Below are positions 9,270 to 47,639 of a stretch of 64,000 nucleotides of DNA, in pieces. The number at the start of each line of letters is the position of its first letter. Position 1 is the stretch's first letter. Source of the DNA: Nageia nagi (lineage: Eukaryota > Plantae > Pinophyta). The position numbers and the translations under genes are program-made. The notes beneath the pieces were generated by a model. The model saw only the letters and a program-made list of their open reading frames with translations. It had not been told where the DNA came from and made no database searches. The stretch covers positions 9,052,001 to 9,116,000 of the forward strand of contig JBITNC010000002.1 of NCBI GenBank assembly GCA_050084985.1, given 5' to 3'.

Positions 9270-10794
9270 ATGATACTTATTTAAATATAACGATAAATAA
9301 ATGAAAAGTATGCATCTGATTATGATAAGATAATCTTCAAGGTATGGCAATGGTATACAGAGCATTGGATCAGATTATGATAAGACAATCCTCAAGATAT
9401 GGTAATGGTATACAAAGGATTGGATTGGATTTGAGACAAACTCGATGATGATGTTGTATTGTGTAGATTAACATTTGTCATCTCTTTTATCTATAGCTAT
9501 GGATCGAAAAGAATCACAATGTGGGCAGTGTGCGAACTTTACAACGTTAACGCTCTAAAACATGCAGAATCAAGTTGCACACAAAACATAGCATGTAATA
9601 GAAGCTTAGAGCATAACATATCCTCGAATAGGTGGCATCTAGAGACAACTTAAGTGTAATATGATCGATGTATGGATAACCACCTATCAAAGAGATTTGA
9701 TAAACATGTCAACCTCCAACTTCTTCATTTGTAACCTTCAAGGACATATAAATAAGTGAAAATCAACTTATAACAATAATATAATCTTTGTGATATTTAA
9801 GATACTTTAAAATATAAACCATGGTAAATGATATTGTATTTAATATAACACATGGTATTGCATTGTGATATCAACTTTATTTTGACATATGTAATATTGC
9901 TTTTAATCTTTAAGGAAGTCTAAAATATGATTTATTAAATAAATAATAAATCATTTTTAGGTGTCTAAACTTTGCATCCTCTAGTGTTTGAATATACTTT
10001 AGGCATTGTGCGTATCCTTGGATCCATAGGATCTAAGGAGCTTTAAGGTTCTTTGTTGAAAACAAATTTTGAATTGTCTTAAAGACTTGAAGTCTTAATT
10101 GTGGTTTAAGTACTCAAAAGTGTTGATTAGATCCATTCAAATTGTTGTTAAATTGCTCAATCTTATATGAATTATGAATAAGCATTTGCACATTACATCT
10201 AAGGCATGATTACATTCTTTCCCTCTATTGATTTGGGGGTAGGGGGCTCATATTACCTTCTGGAGTGAGGCAACTCACACCAAGCTAGTTTGGGTGCCTT
10301 AAGGGGCTCAAATTAGAAGTCCCCCCTACATTGTTAGTTACATTTAGGTTTGATCTAACATTTTCACATGGTTTGAAAACATAATACTTGAAGGTTTATA
10401 TCACATCTTTACCTAATATTTATACCTCATTTAAAGTTTGAAAAATATGTTATGTAGATTTCAATATTCTTGCATGTATTAATTCATTTATGTGTTTTGG
10501 TGCACCCATAGTAAGAACTTTGGTCCACAACTTGCATAACAATTTTCTAGATCATTAGAGCTTCATTAGACTTCAACATGTTCTTCACATCATCAGAGCC
10601 TTACATGTGGCCATGATTTTCTAGCAATTATTGGAGCTTTTCAAATCCTTTAGCTACTTTACTGAAGGTTGGTATCAAAGCTGATTTGTCATGCTTCTCA
10701 CCTATTCTTCAACATGGTGACCTTAGAATTGTGTACCTGATATCAAAGTGAAGGAGAGTTTCACCATTGTGACCCTTCATTTCTAACATGAAGT
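9270..10794. mobile_element. Degenerate retroelement relic upstream of the Copia insertion site
   Basis: 55-bp tandem duplication at ~9318-9428, PBS-like TGGTATCAAAGC at ~10670, no intact ORFs. Confidence 0.3.
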
Positions 10795-11298
10795 TGTGAG
10801 AATTAGCACTACTCTAATTCCCAAAGGTCCAAGACTATGGAAAGCTCAATCACATTCAACATGCAACATCTACAAGCTACTAACACATTCACACAATATG
10901 ACACCAATATAATGTGGTTCCTCCCTCCTTGGGAGTACATCCACAACTAGTTCTCTATTCTCAATCTATGCCTCTCTTACAACTATACTCTTGCTCTCTC
11001 CTACACAACCAAGTAGAGTAATCTTACTCCAAAACTTAGATGTGTTTACAAGAGGAGAGGCCCTCTATTTATAGCTTGAGAGCACCTCCCTAACCTCCCT
11101 TTAACCCAAGGGTTAGGTTAGGGTTACAATAAATGTGTGACCTAACTTTAACCTACCAACTAACCCCATGGTTAGGTCAAAGTCCACACATAATAAAGAA
11201 TTCAATTAATCCCTTAAGGTATCTACATATCCTTTAAGTGATTAATTGAACTTACAAGGAGTTTAGATATTCACAATATTTCATTACAAATTCTAACA
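10795..11298 (-). repeat. 3' LTR of Copia copy 1
   Basis: Near-identical to 19510-20013. TATA box CTATAAATAG on - strand at 11065-11074. Confidence 0.97.
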
Positions 11299-11770
11299 CT
11301 CCCCCTTAATGCAATATTGGGATAGAGCGTAGAAGAGAGAAGAGAGAGAGTAAGAGAGAGTTCTCCTCCATAGAGATACAAGTGGAGATGAGAACATTTA
11401 CATATTTGAGAATCTTTTTGAGAACTAGTATGAGACTCACTACATTACCATTTGACAAAATGGTTTACAATACAATCATTAACCACAACTGGTTTCACTG
11501 TACATAGTAGTTGATCAACTTTAAGCTGACATGTGAGTCTCTATGAGCTTGCTTTCATAAGGTGAGTAACCTGCATTTCTGAAGAAGATCCTGCATGCTA
11601 CAAGCAACTCATGAACAAAATCAGTTAGATGCATCGTATATTCAAATAAGAGAATCAAGTAATGCTATCTTATAAATAACTGATTAATGGTGCACTATAA
11701 GTCATCACGGAGATGCCAAGCCATCACTCATAGTCACCTGTTGTATATAGACATGTGTTGATTATTAATA

Positions 11771-12215
11771 GAGCATAAAAATTGTACAACGAGTTTCTCA
11801 CGCAGAGCAAACTCACCACGGAGGTATAGAATGTACAACAAGTTCGTCATGCAGAGCGAACTTACCATGGAGGTATATTAATTATATGCTCAAATATTGT
11901 ACAACAAGTTTCTCACGCAGAGCAAACTCACCACGGAGGTATAGAGCATGAAAATTGTACAACGAGTTTCTCACGCAGAGCAAACTCACCACGGAGGTAT
12001 AGAATGTACAACGAGTTTCTCACGCAGAGCAAACTCACCACGGAGGTATATTAATTATATGCTCAAAAATTGTACAACAAGTTTGTCACGCAGAGCAAAC
12101 TCACCACGGAGGTATAAAATGTACAACAAGTTTGTCACGCAGAGCAAACTTACCACGGAGGTATAAAAATGTACAACAAGTTTGTCACGCAGAGCAAACT
12201 TACCACGGAGGTATA
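11771..12215. repeat. Tandem array of 8 x 46-bp hairpin-containing units in the Copia 3' UTR
   Basis: Unit TGTACAACRAGTTTSTCACGCAGAGCAAACTYACCACGGAGGTATA, separated by short recurring linkers. Confidence 0.95.
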
Positions 12216-12286
12216 TCATAATCAACACATGCTATACAACAACAAAAGAGCCTCTTAGAGGTGAAGTTGTCATCATTAACAAAGGT

Positions 12287-15200
12287 TCAAACTTCACTCC
12301 CCCTTGAGGGCAACTTCACCAACCCGAGAGAATCCCTAAGCTTGCTGAATTGAGCTTCAGGAAGGGGCTTGGTGAATAGATTAGCAGAGTTTTCAGTAGA
12401 TGGATAATACTCCAAGTGTATGATGTCATCTAGAACCTTCTCCCTGATAAAATGGGCTTGGATTTCCACATGTTTGGTTCACTGATGGAACACAGGATTC
12501 TTAGCCAAAGAGATAGTCGATTGATTATCTGAAGAAATAAGAGATGGGCCATTTTGCTTATACCCAATTTCGTTCAGAAGATGCCTCAGCCAAATAGCTT
12601 CTTGGGCGGCAACAGACATGGCTCGATATTCAGCTTCGGTGGTAGAAAGAGTCACAGTTGGTTGCTTCTTGGAAGCCCAAGAGATAGCACCTGAACCAAT
12701 GCTGAACACATATGCAGAGGTTGATTTTCTGTCATCTCTATCTCCCCCATAATCAGAATCTGAGAACCCTGAGAGAACAATTGAGGGCACTTTGGAATAC
12801 TTAAGAGCAAGATCCTTTGTCCCTGCCACATACCTCAAGATTTGCTTCACAGCATTGAGGTGTTCAACATATGGTTTTTGCATGAATCGTGCCATCAGAT
12901 TCACTGCAAAGGCAATATCAGGACGAGAGATAGTCAGATACAGAAGACTACCGATCAATTGCCTATAAGCTGTAGCATCGACCAACTGAGAATCTGAGCT
13001 CAGTGATACAACGATTCCAGGAGAAATAGGTATTGCAACATATCTACACTCCTCCATTCCAAACTTTTGCAAGATGTCTGATATATACTTAGATTGACTA
13101 AGATAAGTACAATCTTTGTGTTGGTATACTTGCATTCCAAGATAGTAATGCAATAGACCTAAATCAGTCATTTCAAATGTTGCCTTCAGTTTGGATATGC
13201 ACTCTTGGATGATTTCAATATTGTTGCCTGTTATGAGAAGATCATCCACATAAAGGAGAATTAAGACCACGTCTTTTCCTTGATTGAGTACATAGAGATC
13301 TGAGTCGGAGAAGCACTTGGAAAAACCAATATCTGCAAAGAATCCTGAAATTTTCTTGTACCATGCTCTAGGTGCTTGTTTAAGTCCATACAAAGACTTC
13401 TTTAGCTTGCACACAAGAGACTCTTTTCCTTCTGGAATAAATCCTTCTGGTTGATTCATGTAGATTTCAACATCCAAGTCACCATTGAGAAATGCACTCT
13501 TGACATCAAGTTGGAAAACTTTCCATCCCTAAGCTGCAGAAAGAGCAAGGATTATCCTAACAGTAGGCATTTTGGCCATAGGAGCAAAGGTTTCCTCATA
13601 ATCAATACCATATTTCTGAGCGAACCCTTTGGCCACTAACCTTGCTTTGTATTTTTCAACTTCTCCATCAGAATTGTACTTGACCTTGTAAATCCATTTA
13701 TTTCCAATCACATTTTTCTGATTGGGATAAGGAACCAAATCCCAAGTTTCATTTTCCATGAGTGCCTCGTACTCAACTTTCATAGCTTCCATCCAACACT
13801 CTTGCTTGGAAGCTTCTTTGAATGTTGATGGCTCATTCATATTATCAATTTTGGCAAATAAGGATTTATTCAAGGTCATACTTCTTGTAATTCTCTGAGC
13901 TGGAGAATTTTGTTCTTGTGGTGACTTTCCTACATGATCATCCAACCAGTTAGGTGCAGGCATAGAACCTTCTGAATCAGACACCTCAGCATGAGAAGTC
14001 GTATCCTCAGGAAGTTCATTGAACTTGACATCCCTAGAAATAAAGACTGTTTTATGGGATGAGGAGTAGAGCCTGTAACCTCTATGCTGATTATCATACC
14101 CCACAAAGATGCATTTTTTCTGATCTTTTGTCTAGCTTCTTTCTTTTCTCTGAGGTAATGTAGGCAAATGCATCACATCCAAAGACCCTGAAGTGTGAGA
14201 TGTTAGGTTTCTTTCCTGTCCATGCTTCATATGGAGTTTTTCCTTCAACTGCTTTAGTAGGACACCTATTTAGGGTGTGAATAGCAGTGTGAACAGCTTC
14301 TCCCCATAAGAAATTAGGAAGGTTACCCAACATGCATCTTACCATTTCCATAATGGTGCGATTCTTTCTTTCAGCAACTCCATTTTGCTGAGGGGTGTAA
14401 GGGATTATGAATTATCGCTTGATCCCATGTTTAACATAATAATCGTTAAACTCATTGCTATTATATTCACCCCCATTGTCAGATCTCAACATTTTGATCT
14501 TAAAATCAGTTTGATTTTCAACATGTGCCTTGAAGTCTTTAAATCGATCAAAAGTTTGATCCTTGTGCTCAAGTAGATAACCAAATGTCATCCTACTGAA
14601 GTCATCAATGAAGGTCAGAACATAAGAAGCTCCCCCTAGAGACTTAGTCTGAAATGGACCCATCAAATCTGAATGCACAAGCTGAAGAGGACGAGTAGCC
14701 CTGGTTGCCTTATCCTTTTCAAACTTTTGCCTATTCATCTTTCCAAGAATGAACCTTTCACAAAGACCAATTGTGGGTGAAATATTAGGTAAACCTTCCA
14801 TAAGTTCTTGATTTTTCATATCTTGAATACTCTTGTGGTTAAGGTGCCCTAATCGTTGATGCCAAAGATTACCTTTTGAACACACATTTGTAGCAAGACA
14901 AATCTTTGAAGGTACTTGATCCACAATATAAAGGTCATTCTTTACTGATCCTTTCATCAAAGTGGCAAGTCCTTTCTTAACACACCAGGAGTGTGAGGTA
15001 AACTCAAATGAGCATCTTGTTCTTGTAATCTGAATTACTGAGATAAGATTCATCCTTAGCTTAGGCACATAAAAGACATTATCAAGTGCCTTTCCATGAA
15101 TCTTCACATTCCCTATTCCTTGAACATCAAGGACTGTATTATCACCTATCACAACTGTATCCTTGTTGTACTTATGAAAATTTTCAAACTTATCCTTTTC

Positions 15201-16096
15201 ATAACACATGTGATTAGTGCATCCTGAATCAATAATCCAATCATTTGAAATAGTTTGAGTCATTGAGTAGTAGGCAACAGAAGCAGCATGCTTGTTCTTC
15301 TTTTTATTATTGAAATTTCTCACATTTGCATTTCCCTTTCCTTTTTGAGCAAATTTCTTTTTGTGACAATCATACTCTTTGTGCCCAAAGATGCCACAGA
15401 AGTTACAATTCCCATCAAACTTTTTCTGCAATGTTGGTTTGCTTGATCTAGCTTTGTCATTCCTTTGCTTGAAGTTGCTGTGCTTCCTGATGGTAGATGA
15501 GGATTTGTTGTCTTTGAATTTATAATGTTTGAACGTCTTCTTGAAAGGAGTTTTGGTTGCTCCTAGAGCAATGCTATTATCCTTTGGAGAAATGTTCAAC
15601 ATTTTCTTGTTCAAAGTTTCCTCATGCTTCAGAAGGAGTCTAGAAAGATTATCAAGGGAGATAACATCTTCTTCATCATCGAGCCTAGTCTCCATAACAT
15701 CTTCTTCATCATCTTCTTCATTTTGTTCAAGTAGATTGAGGCACTTTCATCTTCTCCTTGACGATACTGCAACAACTTTTGTAGAATGGTGAACCTTCTT
15801 GAAAATTTGGACCCAAGGTAAATTTTCTTTAGTCTGTCCCAAGCTTCTTTTGTTGATGTTGAGGAAGAAATCATGAGAAGGATGTCATCTGAAACTGCAC
15901 GATAGATCATTGAGGTTGCTAACTCATTCTTTGAGTTGTAAATTTCAAGGGCCTTCTCATCTATAGGAGCAACTAGATCTTCATTTACTGTCTGCCACAG
16001 CTTCCTTGCCTGTAACTCAGCTCTCATACGAGGTTCCCATATGCCGTAGTTGGAACCGTCGAGTATGTGCTTGGGTATGAAGGTCTCAAATATTAT
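12287..16096 (-). pseudogene. Copia gag-pol polyprotein (disrupted)
   Basis: LDGSNYGIW gag start, CNFCGIFGHKEYDC zinc knuckle, WIIDSGC protease, LWHQRLGH/RSDNGGEY integrase, YVDDL RT, SDSDYGGD RNase H. Stops at ~14412, ~13529 and ~12479; frameshifts at ~15720 and ~14110. Confidence 0.95.
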
Positions 16097-16224
16097 CTGT
16101 ACAAAAAATAAATATGCAATAAGAATGCAAATTTTACAAGTTTCCATCTATACAAATCAAACATAAGTAAACATGTCCCACATGTGCAAACTTATAACCA
16201 CGATCCGTAGATGAATAATGTTGG

Positions 16225-16700
16225 GGTTGTTTTCTTATGTAGAATTAGGCCTTCACCTAGATGCCCGCAAGGTGGAGCCCAGGTACTACCAGTCCTCAAC
16301 CAGTTCACCTTGGTCAGTGATATACTCTCACAAGGAGAAGTACCTACTATTTTCCAAGGATCCGACGTATCTTGGACTGGCCATTTTAATTATCTTGATT
16401 AAGGTTTTTAGTTTTCCTCCTAGGTTATCAGGATAATCCCTGAATGGACGTGCGAACATGTGGTATCACTACACACATGCCTATCCACCTAATAGAGTTA
16501 TGTCCAATCCAACAGAGGTCTTAGGGGCAATTAAGATGGACTTACCACCACTCGGTTCTTCGGACTAAAAGGGCTCCAGTCTGCCCTGTCCTCACCTTGT
16601 GGCTCCCCAAACAAGTCATGTTGTGGAAGAATACGTGCGGATGTGTTCATTTTAGGGGTTACTTTTCAATATTTGTGTTTTTGCAAGTATAAGCAAATTG
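16225..16700 (-). promoter_or_regulatory. Conserved non-coding leader block of the Copia family (putative cis-acting RNA)
   Basis: Aligns colinearly with 43830-44300 in copy 2 while flanking leader sequence does not. No conserved ORF. Confidence 0.6.
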
Positions 16701-16979
16701 TGCAAAAATATAAGGTAAAGTAAAATTGCATCATCCACATGAGCTTTGAAAAACCTAAAAAAGTCCAATGGGTTTTGTACTAACCCCTAAAGGACTTTTA
16801 CATTTTGTATATTTTGCTCAATATATTCAAGTACTTAATGAATTAAAAAAGAACTAAGTCCTACTTAGCATTTAATTCATAACATGCATTGTTCCATGAC
16901 TTAAAAAAAAATTTAAGTAATCATGCATTAAAAATTTAAGTCCTAAGCATGTTTTATTCTTCAAACAAGATAAAAATAC

Positions 16980-17125
16980 TTGCATCATAAGTCTAGCATG
17001 CAATATCTAGATAAGGTTTATAAGAGACATGCATCACATTTTTAAGATAAAGAGACATGCATCACAAGTCTAGCATGCAATATCTAGATAAGGTTTATGC
17101 ATCACAAGTCTAGCATCTAGATAAA
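16980..17125. repeat. Short tandem repeats in Copia leader
   Basis: GCATCACAAGTCTAGCATGCAATATCTAGATAAGGTTTA in ~3 copies. Confidence 0.8.
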
Positions 17126-18039
17126 ATTTAAGTAAAAATTATACCAATTCCCTCCTTTTCACTTAAAGTGTTATCCCTTGAAAAAGTGTATGCTAAGACT
17201 TGTCTTATAAGTATGCATGTTAAGTAAAAAATTTCCCTTATTTACTTAAAAAATAGCATGCTTAGGCTAAAGTACTATGCTTAAAAAAATGCTAAGAGGT
17301 TAGCATTAAAAATTGCATGTGCACTTTTAGTAATTTAATCATGCAATTAGAAATATTCTAAGTACTCCTAAGTGCATTTAATGGGAGCAATTTGACTTGT
17401 AAGCAAGTAAGTAAAAAAAATTAAATGCCTAAGAGGTATATGTGTGCAAGTTGTAATAGGAGACCCATACCCCTACTTCATGCACTTTAATGTTTCTCCC
17501 ACCTTAAGCACTAAAAAATAAAAAATACTCCTAATTCAAAAAATAATTAAATGCTTTTTAGTTGTAAAAATATGACCCCCCCTTTTTCTTCCACCAAGAA
17601 AAGCATACGTTGCTTTTGGAAGAGCAAAAATGCAAGTAGTCCACTTAATGCATTTAAGTGCATTAAAGTGACTAAGAAGTCTTGCAAGAAGTTGGCAGCC
17701 ATCAACCTTGACCATGGGAAGGAGGAAGACCTTTATGGAGGCACTATAGGATAGCCTATGGAGGTGATGGTGACCATGCTTGGAAGAGTAGATGGTTTAT
17801 CAATTTTTGTTCCTTTTGTAGCCATTTTTTTTTCAAGCGAGTATGAGGAGGAGACTCTACTTTTGACCGCTTCTTGTTATTGTTAATCTCACATATAGTT
17901 TCCAGCATAAACTCCATCCTTTTGCCGATGAGGGAGGAGGCACAGCTGACGCGCACGCTGTTGTGAAGGATTCGAGTGGGGGTTATCTGCCGATGAGGGA
18001 GGAGGCGTAGCTCGTGCGCGAGGAGGATGGGAGACACAG

Positions 18040-19010
18040 TTTTTGTTTGAGCCAAACATGAAGCCTGTTCCAAATCTCCCAGTTTTGCACATGCTTTGAT
18101 GACGATGGAAAAGGAGAAATGATCTGGTTGGACTACTGCTGGTGTTTGTTGCATTTGGCGAAACAGTGTCATTGCCTATCGCAGTCAGTTGGCGAAGGAG
18201 GAGGTCGTGTGAAACATGTTGAAGGAATGGCGGCAAAGGTTACAAAGTTTGGCTTTACGTGTGATAATTGCATATGTTTAAAAGTCTCTCTATCCTTTTC
18301 AGGAAATCCATTTTGTGCATATCCTGCGATCATTGCATTCCATGAAACTGTGTCTGCAGTCAAACAACTCGCGTGACTGCTCTACACTTCCACATTTTGC
18401 ATGCATGTCTACCATGGCATTCACAACTACAACACATGATCGAATTCTGGTTTTAAAGAGTTTTCCTACACGCAACGACATTCTTGGGGGATCGAACATC
18501 CAACTAAGGGCTTGACATACTATATATATACACACGATTTGGCTGAAATGCCAAAGAAATTTCCTACGTGAATTCGAAGAAAAATCTACGAAGCAGTGTC
18601 TAATTGTACCATTTTGGGCATATCCTATGATCAATGAACGAGATTGTAGCTTAAGGAGGAAACAATGCGCAGGTCCTGCCATTTTGTGCATAATGGATGA
18701 GGCAGTTTGTCAGACAATGGTCACGGGTAGCTATTTTGTACATCTCCTGCGATCATTGCAGTCCGTGAAGCGTAGTCTGCATCTGTTCATGGATGCATGC
18801 GAGCAGGCCACGGAGAGGAAGCATGAGCGGGAGCAGTCCATGGGAGGAGGTCGCTGGTTGGACTACTGTCGCTGTTTGTATTTAAACAGTGTCAATGCCT
18901 ATCGAGGAAAGCCATGTTTTTGGTAACCTAAGATCCACGAGAAGGCTCACGTCATTTTGTCAAACAGTTCCCAGACCCTTTCAATGTATTCAATTTGTGC
19001 ATATCCCTTT
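18040..19010 (-). pseudogene. Captured mosaic of PLS-class PPR gene fragments inside Copia leader
   Basis: Fragments translate as LFRQMQQTPAVVQPDHFSFSIVIKACAKLGDLEQ, VSWNAMIAGYAQNGFPEK..VKPNFVTFAAI and VVVNAMVDMHAKCGSVEQSRELFD. Confidence 0.92.
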
Positions 19011-19509
19011 TTTTTTAATTTATGCACAAATTTAAAAATCCTCCTTATAAAAAATACTATGTAAGTATTTCAAAAACTTGTAAATAAAGTAAAGTCCTCC
19101 TTTATTCTTTTGAGTAGAAAAAAAAATTTGTAATATTTCTCAAATGTTGTATACTAACCCTTTTAAAAAAAAAAAAAAAATGTAGCAATTTAAGCAATTT
19201 GTAAAAATTGCAAGTAAAAAAAAAGGTTAGTATAAGCAATAACAACAAACAAGGAACATCATATTACAATTTTGTTAGCCATGTATTGCCCAAACAAAAA
19301 AAATGAGCTCAACACATAGCAAATAATGTTAGTATCATTAGTGCATAAGCCAAAAATTAAAAAAATGAAGGAGATTATATGAAGGAGGTTATACCTTCTC
19401 TTGAATTTACCTCACCAAGAAGATTAGGATTAAGATCTCCAAATTTGAGAAGGATGAAGAACCTCCAAGATGTAAAAGAAGAGCTTCCACACCAAGCTCT
19501 GATACCAAT

Positions 19510-20013
19510 TGTGAGAATTAGCACTACTCTAATTCCCAAAGGTCCAAGACTATGGAAAGCTCAATCACATTCAACATGCAACATCTACAAGCTACTAACA
19601 CATTCACACAATATGACACCAATATAATGTGGTTCCTCCCTCCTTGGGAGTACATCCATAACTAGTTCTCTATTCTCAATCTATGCCTCTCTTACAACTA
19701 TACTCTTGCTCTCTCCTACACAACCAAGTAGAGTAATCTTACTCCAAAACTTAGATGTGTTTACAAGAGGAGAGGCCCTCTATTTATAGCTTGAGAGCAC
19801 CTCCCTAACCTCCCTTTAACCCAAGGGTTAGGTTAGGGTTACAATAAATGTGTGACCTAACTTTAACCTACCAACTAACCCCATGGTTAGGTCAAAGTCC
19901 ACACATAATAAAGAATTCAATTAATCCCTTAAGGTATCTACATATCCTTTAAGTGATTAATTGAACTTACAAGGAGTTTAGATATTCACAATATTTCATT
20001 ACAAATTCTAACA
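19510..20013 (-). repeat. 5' LTR of Copia copy 1
   Basis: Adjacent to PBS; followed by TSD GAAGT (20014-20018). TATA at 19780-19789. Confidence 0.97.
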
Positions 20014-20132
20014 GAAGTTAGATACTATTTGATTCTTAATGGATTGCACTTACTTATTCATCAACAATCATAGGTTGCACTACTACATTTTAGCGATTTT
20101 GAGTCATACTATGTGTCATAAAATTGTATTTT

Positions 20133-20621
20133 TGAAGGATTTGAACTAGATCTAAACAAATCCTCTAGGACCTTAGACTAGGAAACTCATGTGTACACAA
20201 GATAACACAATCACTCAAGATAACACATCAATATAATGTGGTTCCTCCCTCCTTGGGAGTACATCCACAACTAGTTCTCTTATTCTCAAATCTATATCTC
20301 TCTTACAACTATTCTCTAGCTCTCTCCTACACAACCAAGTAGAGTAATCTTACTCAAAACTTAGATATGTTTACATGAGGAGAGGCCCTCTATTTATAGG
20401 TTGAGAGCACCTCCCTAACCTTCCTTTAACCCAAGGGTAAGGTTAGGGTTACATTAAATGTACCACCAAACTTCAACCTACCAACTAACTCCTTTGGTAA
20501 AGTCAAAGTCTATACATTAAAGAATTCTATTAATCACTTAAGGTATCTACATACCCTTAAGTGATTAATTGAATTTACAAGGAGTCTAGATATTCACAAT
20601 ATTTCATTACAAATTCTAACA
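20133..20621 (-). mobile_element. Solo LTR related to Copia copy 1, nested in the CACTA
   Basis: TG..CA ends, TSD ATTTT. Right ~400 bp closely similar to the copy 1 LTR. Confidence 0.9.
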
Positions 20622-27316: not shown

Positions 27317-27955
27317 AACTACAGTATACAGTTTTTTGTACTTTTTTGGTTGGTTTTGGAGTTTGACAAATAATCCCAATTTCTCTGTTTATCTTTATCC
27401 TTGACAGGTAATAAGTTGAAATTTGGAGCATGCAAATGTCATCTTATAGTACTCCATCGTAGTTGTTGAAAAATGCATCCATGAAAAAATTCTAAATCAG
27501 GAGTTACCTAGCTCAAAATTGAAGAATGCTTTCTTGGCTCACTTGAATCTTATCAGAGTATGCTCAGAGCATAAAGATATGATTGACGATTGCATTTATT
27601 TGACTCACTGAACTATAATCTTATCAGAGTATGTTCAGTTGTTGAGAGTATACTGAACTACAGTATACAGTTTTTTTCACTTTTTTGGTTGGTTTTGGAG
27701 TTTGACAAATAATCACAATTTCGCTGTTTATCTTTATCGTTGACAGGTAATAAGTTGAAATTTGGAGCATGCAAATGTCATCTTATAGTACTCCATCGTA
27801 ATTGTTGAAAAGTGCATCAATGATGAAATTCTAAATCAGGAATTACCTAGCTCAAAATTGAAGAATGCTTTCTTGGCTCACTTGACTCTTATCAGATTAT
27901 GCTTAGAACATAAAGATATGATTGACGATTGCAATTATTGGACCCACTGAACCAT
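27317..27955 (+). repeat. ~339-bp tandem duplication spanning splice acceptor and 5' UTR of TAF1B
   Basis: AACTACAGTATACAG...TTGACAGGTAATAAG...GATTGACGATTGCA repeats at ~27317 and ~27656. Confidence 0.92.
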
Positions 27956-27970
27956 AAAGCCATTTTATCA

Positions 27971-28565
27971 ATGGAGAGCACTATGTGCATGAGATGTGGA
28001 TGTATTGGAATGTGTAGTGGAGGGGATGGGTTCTATTACTGTCGGTCATGTGCTACACAATCTCAGGACCTCATAGAGCAGGCAATAGAGAATGATGAGC
28101 TTGTCTTTCAAGGAATTTACAATCGTTCTTTTAGGAGAACAGTACATGCCCCAGTTCAGTCCCAAGCTGAGGTTGATATGCAAACCCAAGTTGACGTGTT
28201 TACAAAATTGCAGAAAGTTAATATGACTGGAGATCAAAGTTGTGCACAAACGGGTGCTGCAATTGACTTAGACGATGATGTACCATTGCAAGATTTTGGG
28301 TCCCAACCGACTTTTTCTGTATTGGATTTTGAGACTTTAGCTTCTGAAATAAGAGAAAGGTATTTGGAGGGTTTGCAAATAATGATTCAGATGCAATGTG
28401 AGTCTTTAGTGGAGAAAATGGGAGTAAGTCCTTTAATTTGTGGGGTGATTGGACCAATATGGTTGCGTTTTGTAGCATCAACTCATGTATTAGAACAAGG
28501 ATGGGCCACTGAAGTGCTCCAGGCTGCAGATGCACTTTATCAAAATCACAGATCGAAAGATGAAG
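27971..28565 (+). CDS. TAF1B: TATA-binding-protein-associated factor, RNA polymerase I subunit B (TAF1B/RRN7, MEE12-like), first coding exon
   Basis: N-terminal zinc ribbon CMRC..DGFYYCRSC and IRERYLEGLQIMIQMQCESLVEK..LICGVIGPIWLRFV. Phase-1 donor G|GTAAGA at 28566. Confidence 0.88.
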
Positions 28566-29912
28566 GTAAGATGAATGGCTGTTAATCCTTTTTCAGTATT
28601 ATAGAAGAATATTCTAACTGAGTTTGTACTTTGTAGCTTACATGTTTGAATGCTAGATATGGTTTTATTATTGGAACCTGATAGGATCTGGAAATCCAGA
28701 TAAATAGATATCCTACTTTGACCATTACTTGTAAACATGTGGTATGGAAGTGTAACTTAAAATTTTCCCCACAGCTGCTCTTGTCTTCCTAATTGCATAT
28801 TGTCTTGATTGAAGTCATACTAATTTTCTGAATTTCTTTAGCAGACTGCTAATCCATCTCTTCTGAATGTTTTGTCTGATGTGATCATTCTTTTAATCTA
28901 GCATATCCGTGTATACATCAAATCCACAAATTCTTCTAATTTTTTGATTATAGTGTGGATTGTAACTTCACTTTTTGCATAAGGTGCTACTGTGCCATGT
29001 AATTTGTTTCTCATAGCTGAGAGGGTGGAAACAGTTGCGTTTTTTTTTAAATATTTTTTTTAAGCAGTTTCCATGAAATGTGAAGATATACTCAAGAGTC
29101 CATGTTCATTTAAACTTAATATAATCTTTATAGATCTACATCTATTAGATAGCAGCAGAATCAAGCGACCAGCTCTAATCAATGTTATGATTAACAAGAT
29201 ATAAGTATAATTAATAAAAAAAATGGAGAAAATTGCAGAAACTGTTATTCAAAAGTTTGAAGTACTTACACACAGAAGAGAATATTACCTTGCAGCATAT
29301 TTCAGATAATCCACAAATGTCCATAAAATTGAGCACCAAACTTAAAGAAACATCCGTTTATATCCTTTCTGTGAAATCCATATACAGTAATACCATATTA
29401 TGACTATAAAGTATGAATGCCTTTGTTTATATTACGCCTATGCAAACTAATGCATATAGATTTATGCAGATGCTTAGTTTGAGAAGTTGAAGAGTCACTT
29501 AATAACTGTCTTAAGTAGCTAAGGCAGTAAGTGGATAGAGTTATATTCAAAACAGAAGTGTATCTTAAGGGAACTGACATGAAAAATATGCAGAATTGGA
29601 AAACAAAATTTGTTGAATTTATTTAAGCCACAGTCAGGATTGTCCACGTCAAGGAACCGCAGTTTTTGTTCTCACAAATCATGAGTAGAAATTAGTGAAA
29701 AATGGACCAAATACTGAATTTTTCTGGCATAATTTATTGAAGAGCTCCCTGAAGCTGTGTTTCAAGCTAGAAAGGTCAATGGAATTTATAAACCTAGGAC
29801 TTTAATAGAATTGGATTAACATACAACTGTGCAATGTAGTCAAACGTGCCAAACAATTTTGAAAGGGAAGATAAATTATATATTAGTATATCAAATTTGT
29901 TATAATATTTTT

Positions 29913-37529: not shown

Positions 37530-39738
37530 TGTAATATTTCAAATTATAAAAATTAGGAATTGTCACAAATTGTATTGAGAAATGCAAAATATGCCAAATA
37601 TGGATGCCAAAAATCAGCTCTAATATTATTGATGCTCAAGAGATAAATGGCTCAACGTCTAGCTTACTGGCTAGGTCTAGTGCTCCAACTCCTCCATAAG
37701 GTTGACGTCACACTTATGGGCTGATGATCTTCCAAATTTGAATGTTGAAGGTCTTCTCACAAGGTGTTTGGAGCTTAATGAGGCTTCAAGAATGATAAGA
37801 GCTTGATGAGGCTCCATCGTGTTGCGCTCGCACAACACACCCCAAGATGTAGCATTTTGGTGACCCAATTTTCGCAAATTTGGCAATCTAGGATGGACAT
37901 GGCTCACAAATTGAAATGGTCTAGATGACTTAAGAGATAGTTCTAAGACATTATCAAGGAATGATATCATGGATTGATATGAGGCAATTTTTCAACGAAG
38001 GCTCATTGGAGAATTCAAGGCGCTTATGCACTAGACCAGGGCTCGCCCAGAAGGATCAAGTGACCAAGCAAATGCCTCCAGTGATGAATAGATAGCATAA
38101 CTTCAGGGTAATTGACAGTTTGATGACTCAGAGTGATGAAGAATCTAGTTTGAGACACGTTTGGGTTTGGAACTTTTCAGTTCCAGCCGAAGGAGCTCCC
38201 TAGGGATGAAATGAAGAGTTAGACTTGCAAAATGATCAAGGTTTAGACTTGGAAAATTTGAAAAATAGGCAATATTGTGCACATGAGAGCTAGGTGCACA
38301 TTTACCATGTTTTCTAACTTTTGTCAAGCATGAGCAAACATGGAAAACCAACGCCTAAGTTTTGGGAGGCTTAAATTGACTCAATCAAAAAAATTGAGCT
38401 TGAGAGCATAGAGGATGAAATTCTACATAGGATTGGTCTTCCAACTTTGCAAATTTGACAAATTTTGCTCACTCAAAAATGAAAAAATAGAAATATAAGA
38501 AAAGAGGAGTTGAGGGCAGCCAATGAGAATACTTGAAAATTTTCTCAAATCTAAGAGAAAGGTGTGATGGCGATCATTAAATTATGCATTTTTGCTCTTG
38601 GAAATGTTGGAAAAACTCAAAAATTGCTCCTCCCATGCATAGGCGTAGGTTTACTAGTTTTCCACCTCTTAGCCATTTTTTTCCAAACTTGCCAAGCATG
38701 GAAAACCAAACCCTCAAAATTTGCCAAAATTGAAATTTTTGACCTCAATGGGGCATAGAATTTGATTCCACACATTATTGAATTTATAATTTTTTAAAAA
38801 CAAAATGGGATCTACTCCTCCAAAATCATGAAAAAATGGACAACTAGTGGTAGTGCTTGAAAATTTTCTCAAAATTTTCAAATTTGTAGAATCAAAATTG
38901 GAGAGATAGGTAGGGTGGGTTTCATGAAATTGAGCATCTTTGCTCTTGAAACCATTGAAAAATCATCAAAATGACCCCCCACCCCCCTAAATGGGCCGCG
39001 CATATTTTCCTTGTTTACTATTTTTTCTAGACTTTTCCAAGCATGCCAAGAATTAGAAAACCTGCGCCTAGCATTCTAGGCCCCTAAAATTCGTTGAAAT
39101 TGTAGTTTTTGGCCTTCATAGGGTCGGTAGTGTGATTTTACACCATTTTGGTCATCCAAGTGTGCAATTTGGACAAGAAAAACTCCTTCAAACCATGGAT
39201 TTATCCTTAAAAATGAAGAAAAAATGAAAAAGATCGTGTTTGACTGTTTTTCTTCAAAATAGTTCAATTTTTCAAATCAAAATGTGAGACATGGGTATCG
39301 AGGGGCATGCAAAATCCTCCAAATTTGCTTCTTTGAGCATGCAAAATAACCCAATCCTCCTCCTCCTATGGCTAGGTGCTGATTTAGTATATTTTCCATG
39401 CCTTGGACAAATTTCCAATGTTCGCATTAAGGAGAAAACTTCAAAATAGCAAAAAAGGGTTGTCTAGGGTTAGTATGGTGATGACATGTGGCATATTTTG
39501 GCCCTGAAATATTTAAATACATTCTCATCCCTCCATAATCCTCCACAATATTCCAATAACCATCCTCAATCCATGCGTTGTAACCGTGAGCAGCGAACAA
39601 GGTGATAAGAAGATGACCTCACATTTCTTCCTAACCGCCTTCACACAGAGTGAACTAACCACGAAGTTGTACACAAAGATCAACACTATACAACAAAAAT
39701 ATCCTTTTAGTGATGAAGTTGTCATCACAAACATGAAT

Positions 39739-42700
39739 TCAACCTTCACTCCCCTTTGAGGGCAACTTCACCAACCTAATAGATTCCCTAAGCTTGCATA
39801 ATTGGGCTTCAAGAAGGGGCTTGGTGAACAAATAAGCAGAATTTAGGACTAATGGACAATACTGCAATTGTAGGATACCATTTAGGATTTCTTTGATAAA
39901 GTGGGCTTGGATTTTGACATGCTTTGTTCTCTGATGGAAAACAAGGTTCTTTGCCAAAGCAATAGTTGATTGATTATCTGAAGAAATTTGAGATGGATGA
40001 GTTTGCTCATACCCAATTTCTTTCAAAAGATGTCTTAACCAAATAGCTTCCTAGGTCATGATTGACATTGCTCGATATTCTACCTCTAGCCCAAAAGATA
40101 GCACTTGGACCAATGCTAAACACATAAGCAAAGGTTGATTTCTTGTCAACTCTATCTCTTCAATAGTTAGAATTTGAGAACTCTAAGAGAACAAATGAGG
40201 GCAACTTAGAATACTTAAGAGCAAGATCCTTAGTTCCTGCAATATACCTCAAAATTTGCTTAACAATATTGAAGTGCTCAACATATGGTTTCTACATAAA
40301 CCGTGCCATAAGATTTATTGCAAAGACAATATCTGGCTTGGAGATCGTCAAATAAAGAAGATTGCCAATTAATTGCCTATAAACCATAACATCCGCCAAC
40401 TGAGAGTTGGAGCTAAGAGACAGAGTAATTTCAGGAAAGACTGGGATTGCAACATGTTTACACTCCTCCTTTCCAAACATTTGCAATATATTTGAGATAT
40501 ACTTGGATTGATTAAGGTAAGTACAATCTTTGTATTGGTACACTTGCATACCAAGGTAGTAGTGGAAGAGACCAAGATCGGTCATTTCAAAAGTTGCCTT
40601 GAGTTTGGATATGCATTCTTGGATGATTTCGACATTATTTTCTGTGATCTACAGAAAAATCCACATAGAAAAGAATCAAGACCAAGTCTTGTCCTTGATT
40701 GAGCACATAAAGATTAGTATCAAAGAAAAACTTAGAAAACCCAATGTCCTCAAAATATCCTAAAATCTTTTTGTACTAGGCTCTAGGTGCTTGCTTAAGT
40801 CCATACAAAGACTTCTTTAGCTTGCACACAAAGGAGTCTTTGCCTTCCACAACAAACCCTTCTGGTTGGTTCATGTAGATTTCCATATCTAAATCACCAT
40901 TGAGAAAAACATTCTTGATATCAAGTTGAAAAACTTTCCATCCCTAAGCTACTAAAAGAGTAAGAATTAATTTGACTGTGGGCATCTTTGCCATTGTAGC
41001 AAAGGTTTCCTCATAATCAACTCCGTATTTCTGAGTGAAACCCTTGACTATTAACCTTGCCTTGTATTTCTCAATTTCTCCAACTGAATTATATTTGACC
41101 TTGTAAATCCATTTATTGCCAATCCCATTTCGTTCATTGGAAGAGAGAACTAAATCCCAAGTTTGATTTTTCATTAGAGCCTCATACTCTACTTTCATCG
41201 CTTCCATCTAGCACTTATGCTTCGAAGCTTCCTCGAAGGATGAGGGCTTATTCTTACTATCGATTTTGGCAAATAAGAATTTATTTAAGGTCATACCTCT
41301 TGTTATCCTTTGTGTTGGAGAATTTTGCTCTTGAGGTGACTTATCTACACTGATATCGATCCAGTTAGTTGCAACAAAAGAGTCATCCAGATCATCACAA
41401 GAAGCAGATTCCTCAATAAGTTCATTGAACTTTACATCCTTCAAGATGAACATTGCTCTGAAGGAAGGAGACTAGAGCTTGTAGCCTTTATGCTGATTGT
41501 CATAGCCCACAAAGATGCACTTTTTGGATCTCTTATCCATCTTCTTTCTTTTCTCAAGAAGGCATAAGCATCACAACCAAAAACCCTAAAGTGAGAGATT
41601 TTGGGTTTCTTTCCCGTCCATGCTTTATATAGAGTTTTGCCTTCAAATGCTTTCGTAGGACACCTAATCAGAGTGTAGATTACAATACTCATGAGTTCAC
41701 CCCATAAGAAGCTCGGAAGATTTCCCAACATGCACCTTGCCATTTTTTGAATGCTCCTATTCTTTCTTTTGGCGACACCATTTTGTGGAGGGGTTTAAGG
41801 GATCATAAACTATCTCTTGATCCCGTATTTGCCACAATAGTCACTGAACTCATTACTATTATACTCACCCTCATTGTCAAATCTCAGCATCTTGATTTTG
41901 AAGCTAGATTGATTTTCAACTAAGGCTTTAAATTTTTTGAACCTATCAAAAGTTTGATTCTTGTTATCTAGAAAGTAACCAAATGTCATCTTGCTGAAGT
42001 CATTGATGAAGGTCAAGACATAAGATGCTCCCCTAAGTGACTTAGTTGGAAATGGACCCATCAAATCTAAATGCATAAGCTGAAGAGGTTGTGTTGCCTT
42101 TGTTGCCTTATCTTTCTCAAATTTTTGCCTATTTATCTTGCCTAGGATGCAATTCTCACAAAGGCCAATTGTGGTTGATATTGTAGGCAAACCTTCCACA
42201 AGTTCTTGATCATTCATAATTTGAATACTCTTATGGTTTATGTGGCCTAATCGATGGTGCCAAATAATGCCTCTAGAGCAAACATTTGTAGCAAGACACA
42301 TCTTTGTTGGAGCTTGATCCATAATGTAGAAATCATTTTTCACTGATCCTTTCACCAAAGTAACAAGTCCCTTCTTCATACACTAGAAGTGTGAGTTGAA
42401 CTCGAAAAAATATCTTTTCCTAGCAACTTGAATTACGGAAGGAAGGTTCATGGTGAGTTAAGGCACAAAGAGCACATTTTCAAGAACCTCTCCTTGCAAT
42501 AACACACTTCCAATACCTTGGACTTCAAGGACTGAATTATCACCTATCACAATTGCATCTTTTTTGTACTTATGAAAATTTTCAAGCTTAGCCTTTTCAA
42601 AACACATGTGATTAAGGCACCTAGAGTCAACAATCCAATCATTTGAGAAGGTGTGAGACTTGGAGTAAAAAGAACAAACATAAGCAAAATTCTTGTTCTT

Positions 42701-43571
42701 CTTCTTCCCATTAAAGTTGTTTGATTTTTCAGATCCTTTGGCACCTTGTTCTTTCTTTTTATTGTAGCAATCAGATTCCCTATGACCATAGATGCCACAT
42801 AAATTACAATTTCCATCAAACTTGGTTTTGGATTTTCTTGACTTGCCGTGCATATTCTGCTGTTTGTTTCCATTTTTCTTGGAATCCCTTTTCAGAGCAT
42901 TGGAAAACTTCTTTTGGTTATTGAACTTCTTTTTGAAGTGAGTCTTCATTGGTCCTAGTGCCATAGAATGTTCTTTAGGAGAGGGGATCAACAACTTTTT
43001 ATTAAGTGTTTCCTCGTGTTTCAAGAAAAGTCTAGAAAGATTTTCCAAGGAGAATACTTCTTGTTCATCATTGAACTTTGTCTCAATAACTGTCACAAAG
43101 TGACTAAATTTAGTAGAGGCTTTGAAGGATGAACACCATAAACTCATTGTTGATCCGATTACAACCCCATCCCACAAGTTGGGTCCTAAGGTCAATAATC
43201 TTGTTCAAGTATATAACCACACTTTCATTTTCCTCTTGACGTGATTGTAATCATTTTTGGAGAAAAGTAAACTTTTTGGAAAATTTGGTTCCAAGGTAGA
43301 TCTTCATCAGCCTGTCCCAAGCTTCCTTTGAAGTGTTTGAAGATGAGATCATGAGAAGAACTTCGTTTGAAACTGCATGAAAGATCATGGAGGTATCTAA
43401 CTCATTCTTTGTGTTGTAAGCCTCGAGTGCCTTCTCATTTATTGGAGCAACTTGGTTTTCATTTACGATTCGCCACAATTTCCATGCTTGGAGCTTTGTT
43501 TTCATCATAGGTTTCCAAATGCCATAGTTGGAACCGTCTAGGATGTGCTTGGGTGAAAAAGAGTCTTCCAT
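39739..43571 (-). pseudogene. Copia copy 2 gag-pol (disrupted)
   Basis: MEDSFSPKHILDGSNYGIW, CNLCGIYGHRESDC, WIVDS, IWHHRLGH, KYKARL, MTDLG, RTKHVKIQAHFI. Confidence 0.93.
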
Positions 43572-46222
43572 TTGCTACAAAAGAAGGTGAAAGTGTTAAC
43601 CAATGTAAGCATGTTAAATTTATCAATCATCAATCATACATGTTGATTATACATGTTGAATTAATCAACTATACTTGTTGAATTTAATCAAAGGTAATTT
43701 ATAAGGCATGCTTAAATTGTTAACCAATTTCACATATGTAAAAGGTTTCAATCTCATCAAATCATATATCCCATACATCCAACATTTTGTCATAACCAAG
43801 TAATATAGTAAAAAAAGTGTAAAGTTGAGGCTTGTTTTCTTGTTTGAATTAGGCTTTCACTTGGATGTCCGCAAGGTGGAGCCTAGGTCCTCCCAATCCT
43901 CAATCAGTTTGCCTTGGTTAGCAATATACTCTCACAAGGAGTACTAGCTATTATCCAAGGTGGTGACATATGTTGGATCGGCGAAATTATTATCTTAATT
44001 AGGTTTTCAGTTGTCCTCTTTGGTTATCAGGATAATCCTTGAATGGACAGGCAAACATGTGGTATCATTACACACATGCTTGTCCACTTATATGGAGTTA
44101 TGTCCATACCAACAGAGGATTTAGAGGTAATTAAGAAGTACAAACTTTTCATCACTTGGATTGATAAACTAAAATGCTCCAATCTACCTTGTCCTCACCT
44201 TGTGGCTCCTCAAACAAGTCATGGTGCAGAATAAAACGTGCGGATGTGTTCATTTTAGAGGAAGCACTTTCAATGTTTGCGATTTTGCAAAAATAAAGCA
44301 AAGGTGCGTAAAGTAAAGTGCTTAAAATGAAACATCATTCAAAAACTTAAAACCTAAGAATCTACATGATACATCATCCAAAAATCTAAGAGTGTTCAAT
44401 GGGTTTTGTCTCAACCCCAAGAGAACCTCTTTACAAAAAAATGCATAAGTCTTTAAGTAACAAAAACAAAGGAGTTCCCCTCGTTTTTACTTAAAATATG
44501 AACTTATCAAAAAAAGAATTTCATGCCTAAAACATACATTTAGCAAGATTTCATGCTTAAAGCCATACACTTAGCAAGATTCCAAGCTTAAAATATACTT
44601 TGCAAAAAACTTCTCTCAAAAAATTAACTTAAAGAATTGATACCTTCTGTCCCTTAATTTTTGAGAAAACAAATGCTTAAATTCCCTTCAAAAATTTACT
44701 TAAGTTAAAATTGCCTTTTTCAAAAAAATAGTTCCCCTTTTTTTTCAAAAATAAATTAACTTAAGTCAAAGACTCCAAAAAATTTGCCCTTTTCAAAATA
44801 ACTCCCATTTGAAAAAAAAATATACAAAAAGAATTTTCCTCCACTTAAAAATTAATTAAGCTCTCAAAACAAATTAAATAACTCCCCTCATAATATCCTC
44901 ATAAATTACTCCCCATTTTAAAAATAATATCCTCATAAACAACTCCTTTCTTTAAAATAATTACCTCCCTTTTTTTAATATATAGCTCCCCACATGTCAA
45001 AAAAAAGAAAAAAATATATAAACAAACTTCAAGAAAAAATTGACAAGTCTTTTTCTACTTCCACTTGCAAATGCAATTAATGCTTTGCATTTGCAATTGC
45101 AATTAATGCATTGTGTAGAAACAATTTCTCTATTTTTGCATTAGTCTCTTCTTAAAAAATGCAGAGAAAAATTTCACCAAAATAGAAAAAAGTCATCTTC
45201 TTAAAAAATGCAGAGAAAAATTTCACCAAAATAGAAAAAAGTTTCTTGAGCCTTCATTTCTTTCAAGAAATGTCAAGAGGGATTACTTACAAAAGACTAT
45301 ATAAAAAAAATTAATTATGGAGCTGAAGAAGCCATATTAGTTGCCTAAGAGAGGATGTAATGGAGGTGTGCAAGTAAAAGGTCGGACGGGCGTTTCATAT
45401 GCAGGGTAGGCGGTGTGTGGGCGATGAGCGGGCGAGTGGTTAGAGGCGGAGTGCTTGGTGAGTGGGGAGAGCGAGGAGGAAAGGGGGGGTGCGTAGAGTG
45501 CACAGCTTTCAGGCGCTGTGTGCGCAAAGTGTGAGATGTTGGGGCGAGTTGGGTAGGCAGAGTGGCGCCACTGTGTGACGTAGTGTGGTGGTCTTTCGCA
45601 TGGCGTGTGGCGTGTTCAACATTGTGTGAGAGGGGGTGCCCTTGGTAGAGTAGAAGGGGGTGTCCTGTTAGGGAGGCGCAACATGTGGTGGGTGCTAGAT
45701 TTTGTGGGTGCTCTCGGTGGCATTGGAAGTGTGTAGGAGAGAGCGGGGGCGAGGGGTATACAGTGATGTGATGGGCCTCAGGGTGGGGTGGTGGTCGAGG
45801 TGGTGCACTAGTTGGAATTGCTGTTGTGGTGTGTAGCGCCAGGCGTACGGTACGAGGAGCGTGGTGGGTGCATAGGTTTCAAAGTGCAGAGTAGCACGTG
45901 GGATGCACTGAGGTGGCGTGTTGACCACCAGTCAGTTGGGTGGAGGCGCTAGCTAGTGGTGTAGCTTGTGAGGAAAAAAATGTTTTTTTTTTTTTTTGTG
46001 CGGGTTGAGGGAAGGGGTGGCGCTAAGATCTGTCGCAGGTTCGGGGCGACCTAGAGGTAGGGGGAGGTGGGTGGCTAGTTTGCTGCCAAGTCTGCATTAG
46101 GGTGGGGGGAGCAACTTGCTGTGGGTGCAGTGTGCGGGCTAGGACCCTTCATAGGTTAAAAAAAATTCTATCTATTCTTTAAATAAACATTCTCAACCAC
46201 TCATTGATGGTGGCACATAGTC

Positions 46223-46225
<3 letters not shown>

Positions 46226-46274
<49 letters not shown>
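46226..46274. repeat. (TA)n microsatellite
   Basis: Uninterrupted TA run of ~24 units. Confidence 0.97.
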
Positions 46275-46277
<3 letters not shown>

Positions 46278-47639
46278 AAAAAATGTTAACATTATAAAAT
46301 AAATGTTTTCTTTTATTTTAAAGACTTAATGTTTTTTTTTGTAAAAAATATATATTGCAAAAAAATAATTCTTTTCTTATTTTTGCATAAAAAATAATTT
46401 CACATATATATTGCAATAATAACACTTTTGAAAAGTTGTAAAACTAAAAAAAATTGCAACTTTTTAAACATTTTTACACACAATATTAGTGTAAAAAAGA
46501 TTGCAAATTTTTCAATATTTCAAAAAAAATTGCAAATTTAAACAATAGCAAATATTGCAACACATTATTACTATACTTTAAATATGTTAGTATCAAAAAA
46601 TAATCCAAAAGAATAAAAGAGAGAGGTTATACCTTAAAATTGATTTTACCTGACCAATGAAGTAGGGAGAAGAAGTAAGAATAACCTCCAAACTATTGAA
46701 GATGAGCCTTCAAGGATGGGTCTAGATACCACTTGAGAGAAACTAATCCTAAATGACTATATTTCTCTACAACCAAGATCACAAGAAAGCTCACACAACT
46801 TCAACATAATAGCATAACACAATAGCCAATCTCACAAACTTAACACCAATGTAAAGTGGTTCCTCCAACCATGAGAGTACATCCATGAATCTAAGATTTT
46901 TGTTCTCAAGATGCACTCTCTTACAACAATTCTTCCCATTTCTCCTAACAACTCTAAAGCATAACAATACTACAAACTTGAGTGAGTAATCTCAAGGAGA
47001 GGGCCCTCTATTTATAGGGCAAAATCCTTCCTTGGATAACTCTTTTAACCATTGTACAAAGTCATGACATGCAACACCTTTTAACCCAAGGGGCATATCC
47101 ATGAGATGGAGTGTAGGGCAAGTTACATTATTTTATTCACAAATACTTAAAAGGTATCTAGTGATACTTTTAAGTATTAATGAATTTACATTACCTTATT
47201 CACTAAATACGTAAGTATCCAGGATACCTTCAAGTATTAGTGAATTTACATTAAGAGACCTTACAATAATGCATTATACATTCCAATAGTACCTCCTTCA
47301 AGGATCCCAGACGTGATAGCCCCATGCAGCCACAAGACTATAGGCCACCACATTATGGCATATTTCTCCTTATATACCCAAAAGATTGCCTTGATCATCT
47401 TACAAAAAGAAATATTAGCATCAACAATAAAAGTGGAGAATGATTCCCAATACTTGAACAATATTGCAACAGTGAGGGTCATCCATAATGTCATCTTGAG
47501 CTTCATGGAGAGTGTAGCCCAAGCTTTTTGGAGAGGTTGCTCCTCCTCATCCCTAGATGTCCCACGTTGCACAGTCTCTTCCTCATGCATGCTTCTTCCT
47601 GCGTCCATCCACTCCAACTGATGTGAAGATATTTGAGGG

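Follow-up and report, generated by a model that had tools for sequence, protein, structure and literature searches.

This study concerns a 64,000-nucleotide (nt) stretch of the Nageia nagi genome (assembly GCA_050084985.1, contig JBITNC010000002.1, positions 9,052,001 to 9,116,000 of the forward strand; hereafter the window), in which two related long terminal repeat (LTR) retrotransposons of the Ty1/copia superfamily lie on the minus strand, copy 1 at 10795-20013 and copy 2 at about 39641-47100. Based on the comparison of these copies with their relatives, we propose that this Ty1/copia lineage likely carries a U2-type (GT-AG) intron in its leader, which would span about 2-3.6 kb from donor to acceptor and lie between the primer-binding site (PBS) and the gag start codon. 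The proposal is supported by a conserved donor, a branch-point-like motif, a pyrimidine tract followed by AG, the U-richness of the interval and the junction found in the short-leader relative L015. An earlier note on this DNA had described the leaders of both copies as unusually long and had suggested that they are spliced; the length was borne out, with PBS-to-gag distances of 3.4 kb (copy 1) and 3.2 kb (copy 2), while the suggested splicing gained the conserved signals, the U-richness and the retrocopy-like junction of L015 in its favor but found no spliced junction in the sequencing-run contigs to back it.

A gag search gave 39 relatives, and Joint Genome Institute (JGI) metagenome contigs scanned with the gag alignment gave 53 loci, of which L001-L041 belong to the copy 1 family or lineage; about 25 distinct copies remained after duplicate removal, with nine leaders that include the 5′ end and eight that are full-length. 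The donor and acceptor motifs first noticed in copies 1 and 2 were all read at their minus-strand coordinates. Donor 2, which reads AAG|GTATAA in copy 1 (19394-19399, intron base 1 at 19394) and likewise in copy 2 (46632), occurs as xAG|GTATA(A/T) in all nine distinct leaders, namely those of the two window copies (W1 and W2) and of L001, L006/7, L018, L021, L027, L030 and L041, at about 100 nt past the tRNA-Met PBS. Donor 1 is variable across the family: it reads GAG|GTAAAT in copy 1 (19405-19410, intron base 1 at 19410) and CAG|GTAAAA in copy 2 (46649, the pair occupying 46627-46649), and the GTAAA is found 16-18 nt upstream of donor 2 in seven of nine leaders, being lost in L021 and L030, so that the tandem donor pair claimed by the earlier note is constant in its downstream member and variable in its upstream one.

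At the other end of the interval, the putative 3′ splice site of copy 1, TTTTTTGTACAG| (16097-16108, AG end at 16097), is homologous to the pyrimidine tract and AG of the family, and that of copy 2, TTCTTTTGTAG| (AG end at 43575), is followed by CAA and the gag ATG at 43571-43569 (the whole at 43569-43585). This candidate acceptor, a pyrimidine tract with TAG (CAG in copy 1) placed 2-3 nt before the gag ATG, is present in 20 of 24 main-family copies, and the same TAG|AA-ATG is found in the divergent relatives L033, L035 and L038, with about 60-70% gag identity. In both window copies the candidate AG stands exactly seven codons ahead of the conserved Pro-Lys of gag, and a branch-point-like ATGCTTAC, at least 90% conserved, precedes the acceptor AG by about 22-35 nt, the canonical branch-point distance. 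The flanks of these motifs are only 68-80% identical, and exon 1 around the donors is just 68-75% identical between leaders, with indels; since donor 2 is nevertheless kept in 9/9 leaders and the acceptor in 20/24 copies, the retention of the splice-like motifs goes beyond chance. Therefore, the family-wide conservation of splice sites for which the earlier note had called was found.

The base composition of the interval points the same way. Its U content is 33-40% versus 27-30% in gag, and its GC content is 29-37% versus 34-45% in exon 1, which is the direction expected of plant introns, these being U-rich and GC-poor relative to exons (PMC3735527). The contrast between interval and exons is weakest in copy 1 because of the cargo that this copy holds.

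One relative, L015, has its PBS only 111 nt ahead of the gag ATG. An ungapped alignment of L015 with L006/7 covers the same 37 nt, from GGTTTAC to the exon 1 end at donor 2, and at this point L015 runs straight into CAA-ATG, the sequence that stands after the acceptor AG in most relatives. A tree built on 1.1 kb of gag places L021 as the sister of L015 (support 0.98; the two are 89.6% identical across these 1.1 kb) and nests L015 below five further nodes (support 0.89-0.999), the other members of which all have long leaders. Therefore, the short leader represents a derived loss of precisely the donor-2-to-acceptor interval, and reverse transcription of a spliced RNA would be its simplest cause, as judged from sequence.

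Copy 1 shows which RNA is replicated. The insertion (10795-20013) is flanked by a perfect 5-bp target-site duplication, GAAGT, at 10790-10794 and 20014-20018, and comparison of the window with itself revealed a direct repeat of 505 bp, at 10794-11298 and again at 19509-20013, the two units differing by one mismatch (99.8% identity). These correspond to the 3′ LTR (10795-11298), with TG...CA ends, and the 5′ LTR (19510-20013), with a TATA box CTATAAATA; the polypurine tract AAGGGGGAG (11299-11307) adjoins the 3′ LTR, and the initiator tRNA-Met PBS TGGTATCAGAGC, at 19507-19496, lies 2 nt past the 5′ LTR and is included in leader exon 1 (19395-19507). The Pfam domains on the minus strand follow the Ty1/copia order, Retrotran_gag_2, Pol_BBD, gag_pre-integrs, rve and RVT_2, and gag-pol (12185-16096) is broken into at least four open reading frames (ORFs). 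Given the near-identical LTRs, the target-site duplication, PBS, polypurine tract and copia domains, together with the broken gag-pol, copy 1 is a very young, complete and protein-defective insertion, and as its single LTR mismatch marks it as so young, expression of the family probably continues. Since the whole leader persists in the genomic copies, with copy 1 flanked by its target-site duplication and bearing near-identical LTRs, the full leader has been carried through retrotransposition, and the unspliced RNA is the replication template.

The earlier note had also placed gag directly behind the acceptor in both copies. This applies as it stands to copy 2, with its CAA ATG, and needs a correction for copy 1, in which the acceptor AG is followed by ATA ATA, the family ATG position (16093-16091) reading ATA ahead of the broken gag-pol; the gag N-terminus of the family is MGE(S/T)FLPKHILDGSNYGIWEP. 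An in-frame ATG at 16147-16145, within the putative intron of copy 1, opens a 172-residue gag ORF with a 17-residue N-terminal extension, and, as the normal start position reads ATA, it could initiate gag on unspliced copy 1 RNA. Two further observations concern the surroundings of this copy. A third LTR copy at 20203-20621, in the same orientation and 190 bp beyond the 5′ LTR, is 90-91% identical to positions 88-505 of the copy 1 LTR and probably belongs to this family as a solo LTR or a truncated one, and a tandem array of ~173-bp units (11768-12228; the first two units 94% identical) occupies the copy 1 3′ untranslated region between the pol end and the polypurine tract.

Copy 2 is old and heavily decayed, and a search for its 3′ LTR detected none. 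It is 77-79% identical to copy 1 across gag-pol and across the block upstream of gag, and it retains a degenerate PBS, TGGTATCTAGACC (46719-46731). Within its leader lie a conserved block at 43820-44302, 79% identical to copy 1 16216-16697, and a central block at 45332-46171 whose sense strand is rich in C (42% C, 14% G) and for which no homologue was found.

GC profiles reveal one plan common to the eight full-length leaders, those of both window copies and six further independent ones, so that the layout of AT-rich, GC-richer, AT-rich and conserved segments first noticed in the two window copies extends to the family. Exon 1, of about 100 nt and about 40% GC, is followed by an AT-rich spacer of about 500 nt with 14-28% GC, a GC-rich island of 0.2-1.4 kb with 45-80% GC, 1-1.5 kb of AT-rich sequence, the conserved block with about 40-46% GC, and 120-200 nt of AT-rich sequence that ends at the acceptor. 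In copy 1 these parts are represented by AT-rich spacer A (18988-19393), the first ~100 nt of which are conserved, a GC-richer central block (17590-18987), AT-rich spacer B with short tandem repeats (16801-17589) and the conserved block (16216-16800). Between subfamilies the leader can be aligned just over ~100-250 nt at its start and ~0.6-1.4 kb at its end. L027 and L030 are 75% identical at 1-375 and 79% identical over the last ~900 nt, yet unrelated over the ~1 kb between, and L001 and L007 show a similarly abrupt end of homology; such abrupt ends between close relatives indicate replacement rather than slow decay. The leader thus contains a variable slot.

What fills the slot differs from leader to leader. 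Neither BLAST nor local alignments tested against shuffles (all z < 3) show any similarity among the GC islands of the eight leaders, and common descent of the C-rich blocks was rejected, as no alignment score exceeded that of shuffles at this level. The central block of copy 1 is a mosaic of pentatricopeptide repeat (PPR) fragments and C-rich stretches with internal duplications; as the earlier note had it, the PPR content is real (Pfam PPR_2 PF13041, E = 2.3e-8; PPR PF01535, 1.2e-5; PPR_3 PF13812) and the block is unrelated to that of copy 2. Sense-strand C-richness (33-42% C, 14-18% G) is seen in five of the eight islands, and those of L018 (7867-8091) and L027 (4138-4337), flanked by A/T homopolymer runs, are CpG-rich and minisatellite-like, with units such as GGCCAGC..CCCGCGGCC and GCGCAGTCCCCAAGGGGG. 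The seven blocks other than that of copy 1 gave no Pfam match in the single longest ORF of each block, taken in one frame on one strand, and the longest ORF of the L007 block (antisense, 129 residues) has no homologue. Gene-fragment capture is therefore demonstrated for copy 1 alone, whose block is the sole recognizably host-derived one among the eight. The swappable payload of the earlier note thus survives as a central 1-2 kb that is non-homologous even between 75-79% identical flanks (L027/L030, L001/L007), with a GC block at a fixed relative position, but a host origin is recognizable in one block out of eight. PPR genes or fragments are frequent neighbors of the family, and PPR-like sequence 70-92% identical to the copy 1 cargo was seen just outside copia copies, at 1241-2202 in L021/L022 and 4305-4561 in L030.

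The conserved block inside the putative intron (16216-16800 in copy 1) is a non-coding segment and a candidate structured cis element. Nearly all relatives have it, at 75-90% identity and with a column identity of 0.8-0.94 that equals that of gag, and a coding reading was rejected since neither its ATGs nor its frames are conserved. An RNAalifold consensus fold contains 93 pairs; 94.2% of cells are paired, a level reached by 0/500 shuffles, and double-sided changes number 29 versus 18.6 +/- 3.6 in shuffles (1/500), including one hairpin pair that changes from C-G to U-A in 7/16 sequences. These results give modest support to the block being a structured RNA element. An Rfam scan of 10-48 kb at E <= 1 returned nothing.

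Several observations weigh against the splicing of this leader. The acceptor AG is missing from four of 24 main-family copies, which read TAA (L016/18/19) or TAT (L039) instead, and donor 2 is weak because it has no G at +5. In most leaders (copy 1 ~19335, copy 2 ~46590, L007, L018, L021 and L027), a conserved (T/C)GATACTAACAT (TACTAAC) follows donor 2 by 45-55 nt. This motif matches the branch-point consensus, yet its place is the interval's 5′ end; its presence hints that splicing could be more complex, and it may be the sign of a small initial intron or of some other cis element. ATGs are scarce in exon 1 (2 in 810 nt, versus about 2.6 per 100 nt in the interval), but the R-U5 of copy 1 holds six ATGs, so that splicing would give no ATG-free leader, and the upstream-ATG argument was accordingly dropped from the support for splicing. 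As for L015, the case is one old copy, its LTR is truncated to the last ~125 nt, and a few bases at the end of its exon do not match those of its relatives.

Contigs from sequencing runs likewise offer no support. A run search gave eight runs, none of them on record as RNA; Logan contigs of four of these, which were only guessed to be RNA, were placed on the window, and no joint from 19394 or 19410 to 16097 was present among them, these contigs being short, of uncertain RNA or DNA nature and prone to lose rare forms. Contigs cross the donors unspliced (19254-19420 in run X1, 19186-19414 in run X2) and also the acceptor (16032-16375 in X1, 16037-16192 in X2). Depth is the same over the LTR, gag and the conserved block, and if the runs were RNA, the equal depth of the block and gag would argue against efficient splicing. 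Depth over spacer B of copy 1 (16872-17663) is 83-240 in X1, against 11-39 over gag, and this spacer seems to form a repeat by itself. Since LTR, gag and block are equally deep and spacer B is deeper than gag in X1, the runs are probably genomic DNA, hence uninformative on splicing rather than negative. The copy 1-specific spacers have near-zero depth in X3 and X5, very high depth at 18258-18455 comes from the PPR gene family, and overall the run contigs show that the copy 1 cargo is rare relative to the family and that the family is present under more than one organism label.

Taking the leader intron as likely, we propose how it could serve the element. The spliced RNA, with a short leader and an ATG in good context, would be the gag-pol mRNA, and the weak donor would let part of the RNA escape splicing, which would yield a pool of spliced mRNA and a pool of unspliced genomes. 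The conserved, probably structured intronic block of ~600 nt could act on the unspliced RNA only, for example in packaging, dimerization or export, and its absence from spliced RNA would mean that spliced copies are rarely replicated, which fits the one intron-less copy among about 25. Between the conserved ~200 nt at the 5′ end and ~0.8-1 kb at the 3′ end, a free interval would be left in which sequence is swapped between subfamilies and foreign or repetitive sequence may gather; the pickup of PPR fragments by copy 1 would be most simply explained by non-homologous recombination or template switching that is tolerated where coding and cis functions are absent. Whether the intron amounts to a division of labor combined with a cargo slot, namely transduction at no translational cost by a natural, retroviral-vector-like carrier that would repeatedly take up and spread host sequence, such as PPR fragments that could seed small interfering RNAs (siRNAs) against a large gene family, is a more tentative matter and, in our judgment, rather doubtful. 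That such cargo would cost nothing in translation, as the earlier note held, is pure inference.

Other explanations of the leader must be weighed against a single intron. It could be a mosaic of several introns and non-coding exons, with the GC island and/or the conserved block kept in some isoforms; as plants define exons by GC contrast, the complete removal seen in L015 would then be just one isoform. The GC island of every leader is indeed flanked by spacers of 14-28% GC, the TACTAAC past donor 2 would suit a first small intron, and donor-like sequences are present inside the interval, CAAG|GTGAGG within the conserved block of many copies (W1, W2 and L002 among them) and GTGGTG|GTAAGT in copy 1 only. 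We nevertheless regard this mosaic as unlikely: no conserved AG/GT pairs turned up at the edges of the GC blocks, the internal GTAAGT of copy 1 is not kept in copy 2 or in most relatives, and L015 lost the whole interval. Another explanation dispenses with splicing altogether. The structured block and the pyrimidine tract with AG beside the AUG could form an internal ribosome entry site (IRES) or a shunt-landing element of the Yn-Xm-AUG type, from which gag would be translated on full-length RNA despite 60-95 upstream ATGs, and L015 would be a deletion derivative. The conserved, probably structured block does end 120-200 nt ahead of the ATG, the pyrimidine tract is fixed beside that ATG, the U5 of copy 1 already has ATGs, and the run contigs show no spliced joint. 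But a constant GT donor just past the PBS and a branch-point-like motif at the canonical distance would both go unexplained, and a random deletion within about 3 kb is not expected to have both ends at most 1 nt from the predicted GT and AG; on this evidence an IRES or shunt is quite improbable.

Very improbable, finally, is a leader merely inflated by independent nested insertions and decay, with the GT and AG as functionless chance matches. It would agree with the unrelated middles of the leaders in different subfamilies and with AGGTATAA occurring 8 times in the window on both strands. However, in 9 and in 20/24 independent copies, which span about 60-90% gag identity, the same layout and motifs recur at positions that align, copy 1 transposed recently with its whole leader, and the L015 junction coincides with the predicted sites, so the family comparison largely refutes this explanation.

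Elsewhere in the window, plus-strand ORFs at 62794-63783 and 27929-28585 have weak, sub-threshold Pfam matches to the Rrn7/TAF1B cyclin domains and the RRN7 zinc ribbon and may derive, as fragments or as copies, from a TFIIB-like gene of RNA polymerase I. A plus-strand RVT_1 reverse transcriptase at 51291-51788 (E = 8.8e-26) indicates another, non-copia retroelement there, and the repeat pairs 34899-35957/53751-54047 and 37530-37813/49717-50072 suggest a second large element or a duplication.

If the leader intron is real, an intron of kilobase size that lies wholly in the leader and runs up to the gag ATG would solve in a different way the problem of one transcript serving both translation and replication, and the conserved block inside it makes this question directly testable. 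It would also provide a structural reason for a lineage to tolerate and spread foreign sequence at one fixed place, which bears on gene-fragment capture in large plant genomes. No description of Copia leader introns was found in the literature searches. According to a December 2025 review, plant LTR retrotransposons are generally without introns, Ogre and EVADE being the exceptions (PMC12786077), and the spliced Copia cases named in the BARE1 paper are copia and BARE1 (PMC3735527). In Drosophila copia, barley BARE1 and Arabidopsis EVADE (shGAG), the introns lie within or after gag, in pol, and a gag-only subgenomic RNA sets the Gag:Pol ratio (PMC3735527, PMC5580714, PMC12786077). The family reported here shares with them the Ty1/copia superfamily and the predicted use of the host spliceosome to make two RNA species with different roles, whereas its candidate intron lies wholly upstream, 2-3 nt before the gag ATG, and would remove no coding sequence.

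Ogre, of the Tat lineage of Ty3/gypsy, keeps a conserved spliceosomal intron in its genomic copies, according to the accounts of Steinbauerova et al. (2008) in PMC3735527 and PMC12786077. As far as these accounts go, both are plant LTR retrotransposon families with a conserved intron, here a putative one, retained in genomic copies; however, Ogre belongs to the other superfamily, its intron interrupts the polyprotein and its removal restores the frame, while the candidate interval is entirely in the 5′ leader, and no variable cargo is reported for Ogre in them. The plant pararetroviruses CaMV (cauliflower mosaic virus) and RTBV (rice tungro bacilliform virus) have long leaders in which short ORFs abound, together with shunting and with splice donors inside the leader (PMC5902531). 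Their leaders resemble the present one in being long, ATG-loaded leaders of plant reverse-transcribing elements, with a structured element and splice donors, but these viruses are episomal, their leaders measure 0.6-0.7 kb, and splicing serves downstream ORFs rather than the first. Maize Bs1 is a known case of gene-fragment capture by an LTR retrotransposon. Large-scale capture of this kind by LTR retrotransposons has been described in gymnosperm and maize genomes (PMC13477047). Copy 1 is similar in holding host PPR fragments inside a transposition-competent LTR element; known captures, however, are scattered and usually replace internal sequence, whereas here the variable material occupies one fixed interval between conserved splice signals in every subfamily.

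In the leaders of retroviruses such as murine leukemia virus (MLV) and HIV-1, the major splice donor follows the PBS and the packaging signal lies between this donor and gag; unspliced RNA serves for the translation of gag-pol, and the place of the acceptor is far downstream, ahead of env or the accessory genes. The copia leader is alike in its donor at about 100 nt past the PBS, in the conserved, probably structured element between donor and gag, and in the replication of unspliced RNA, but its acceptor stands 2-3 nt before the gag ATG, so that the spliced RNA would be the gag-pol mRNA and the intron, of 2-3.6 kb, would be non-coding. By analogy, therefore, the leader arrangement of this family may work most like that of a retrovirus, but with the acceptor placed at gag itself.

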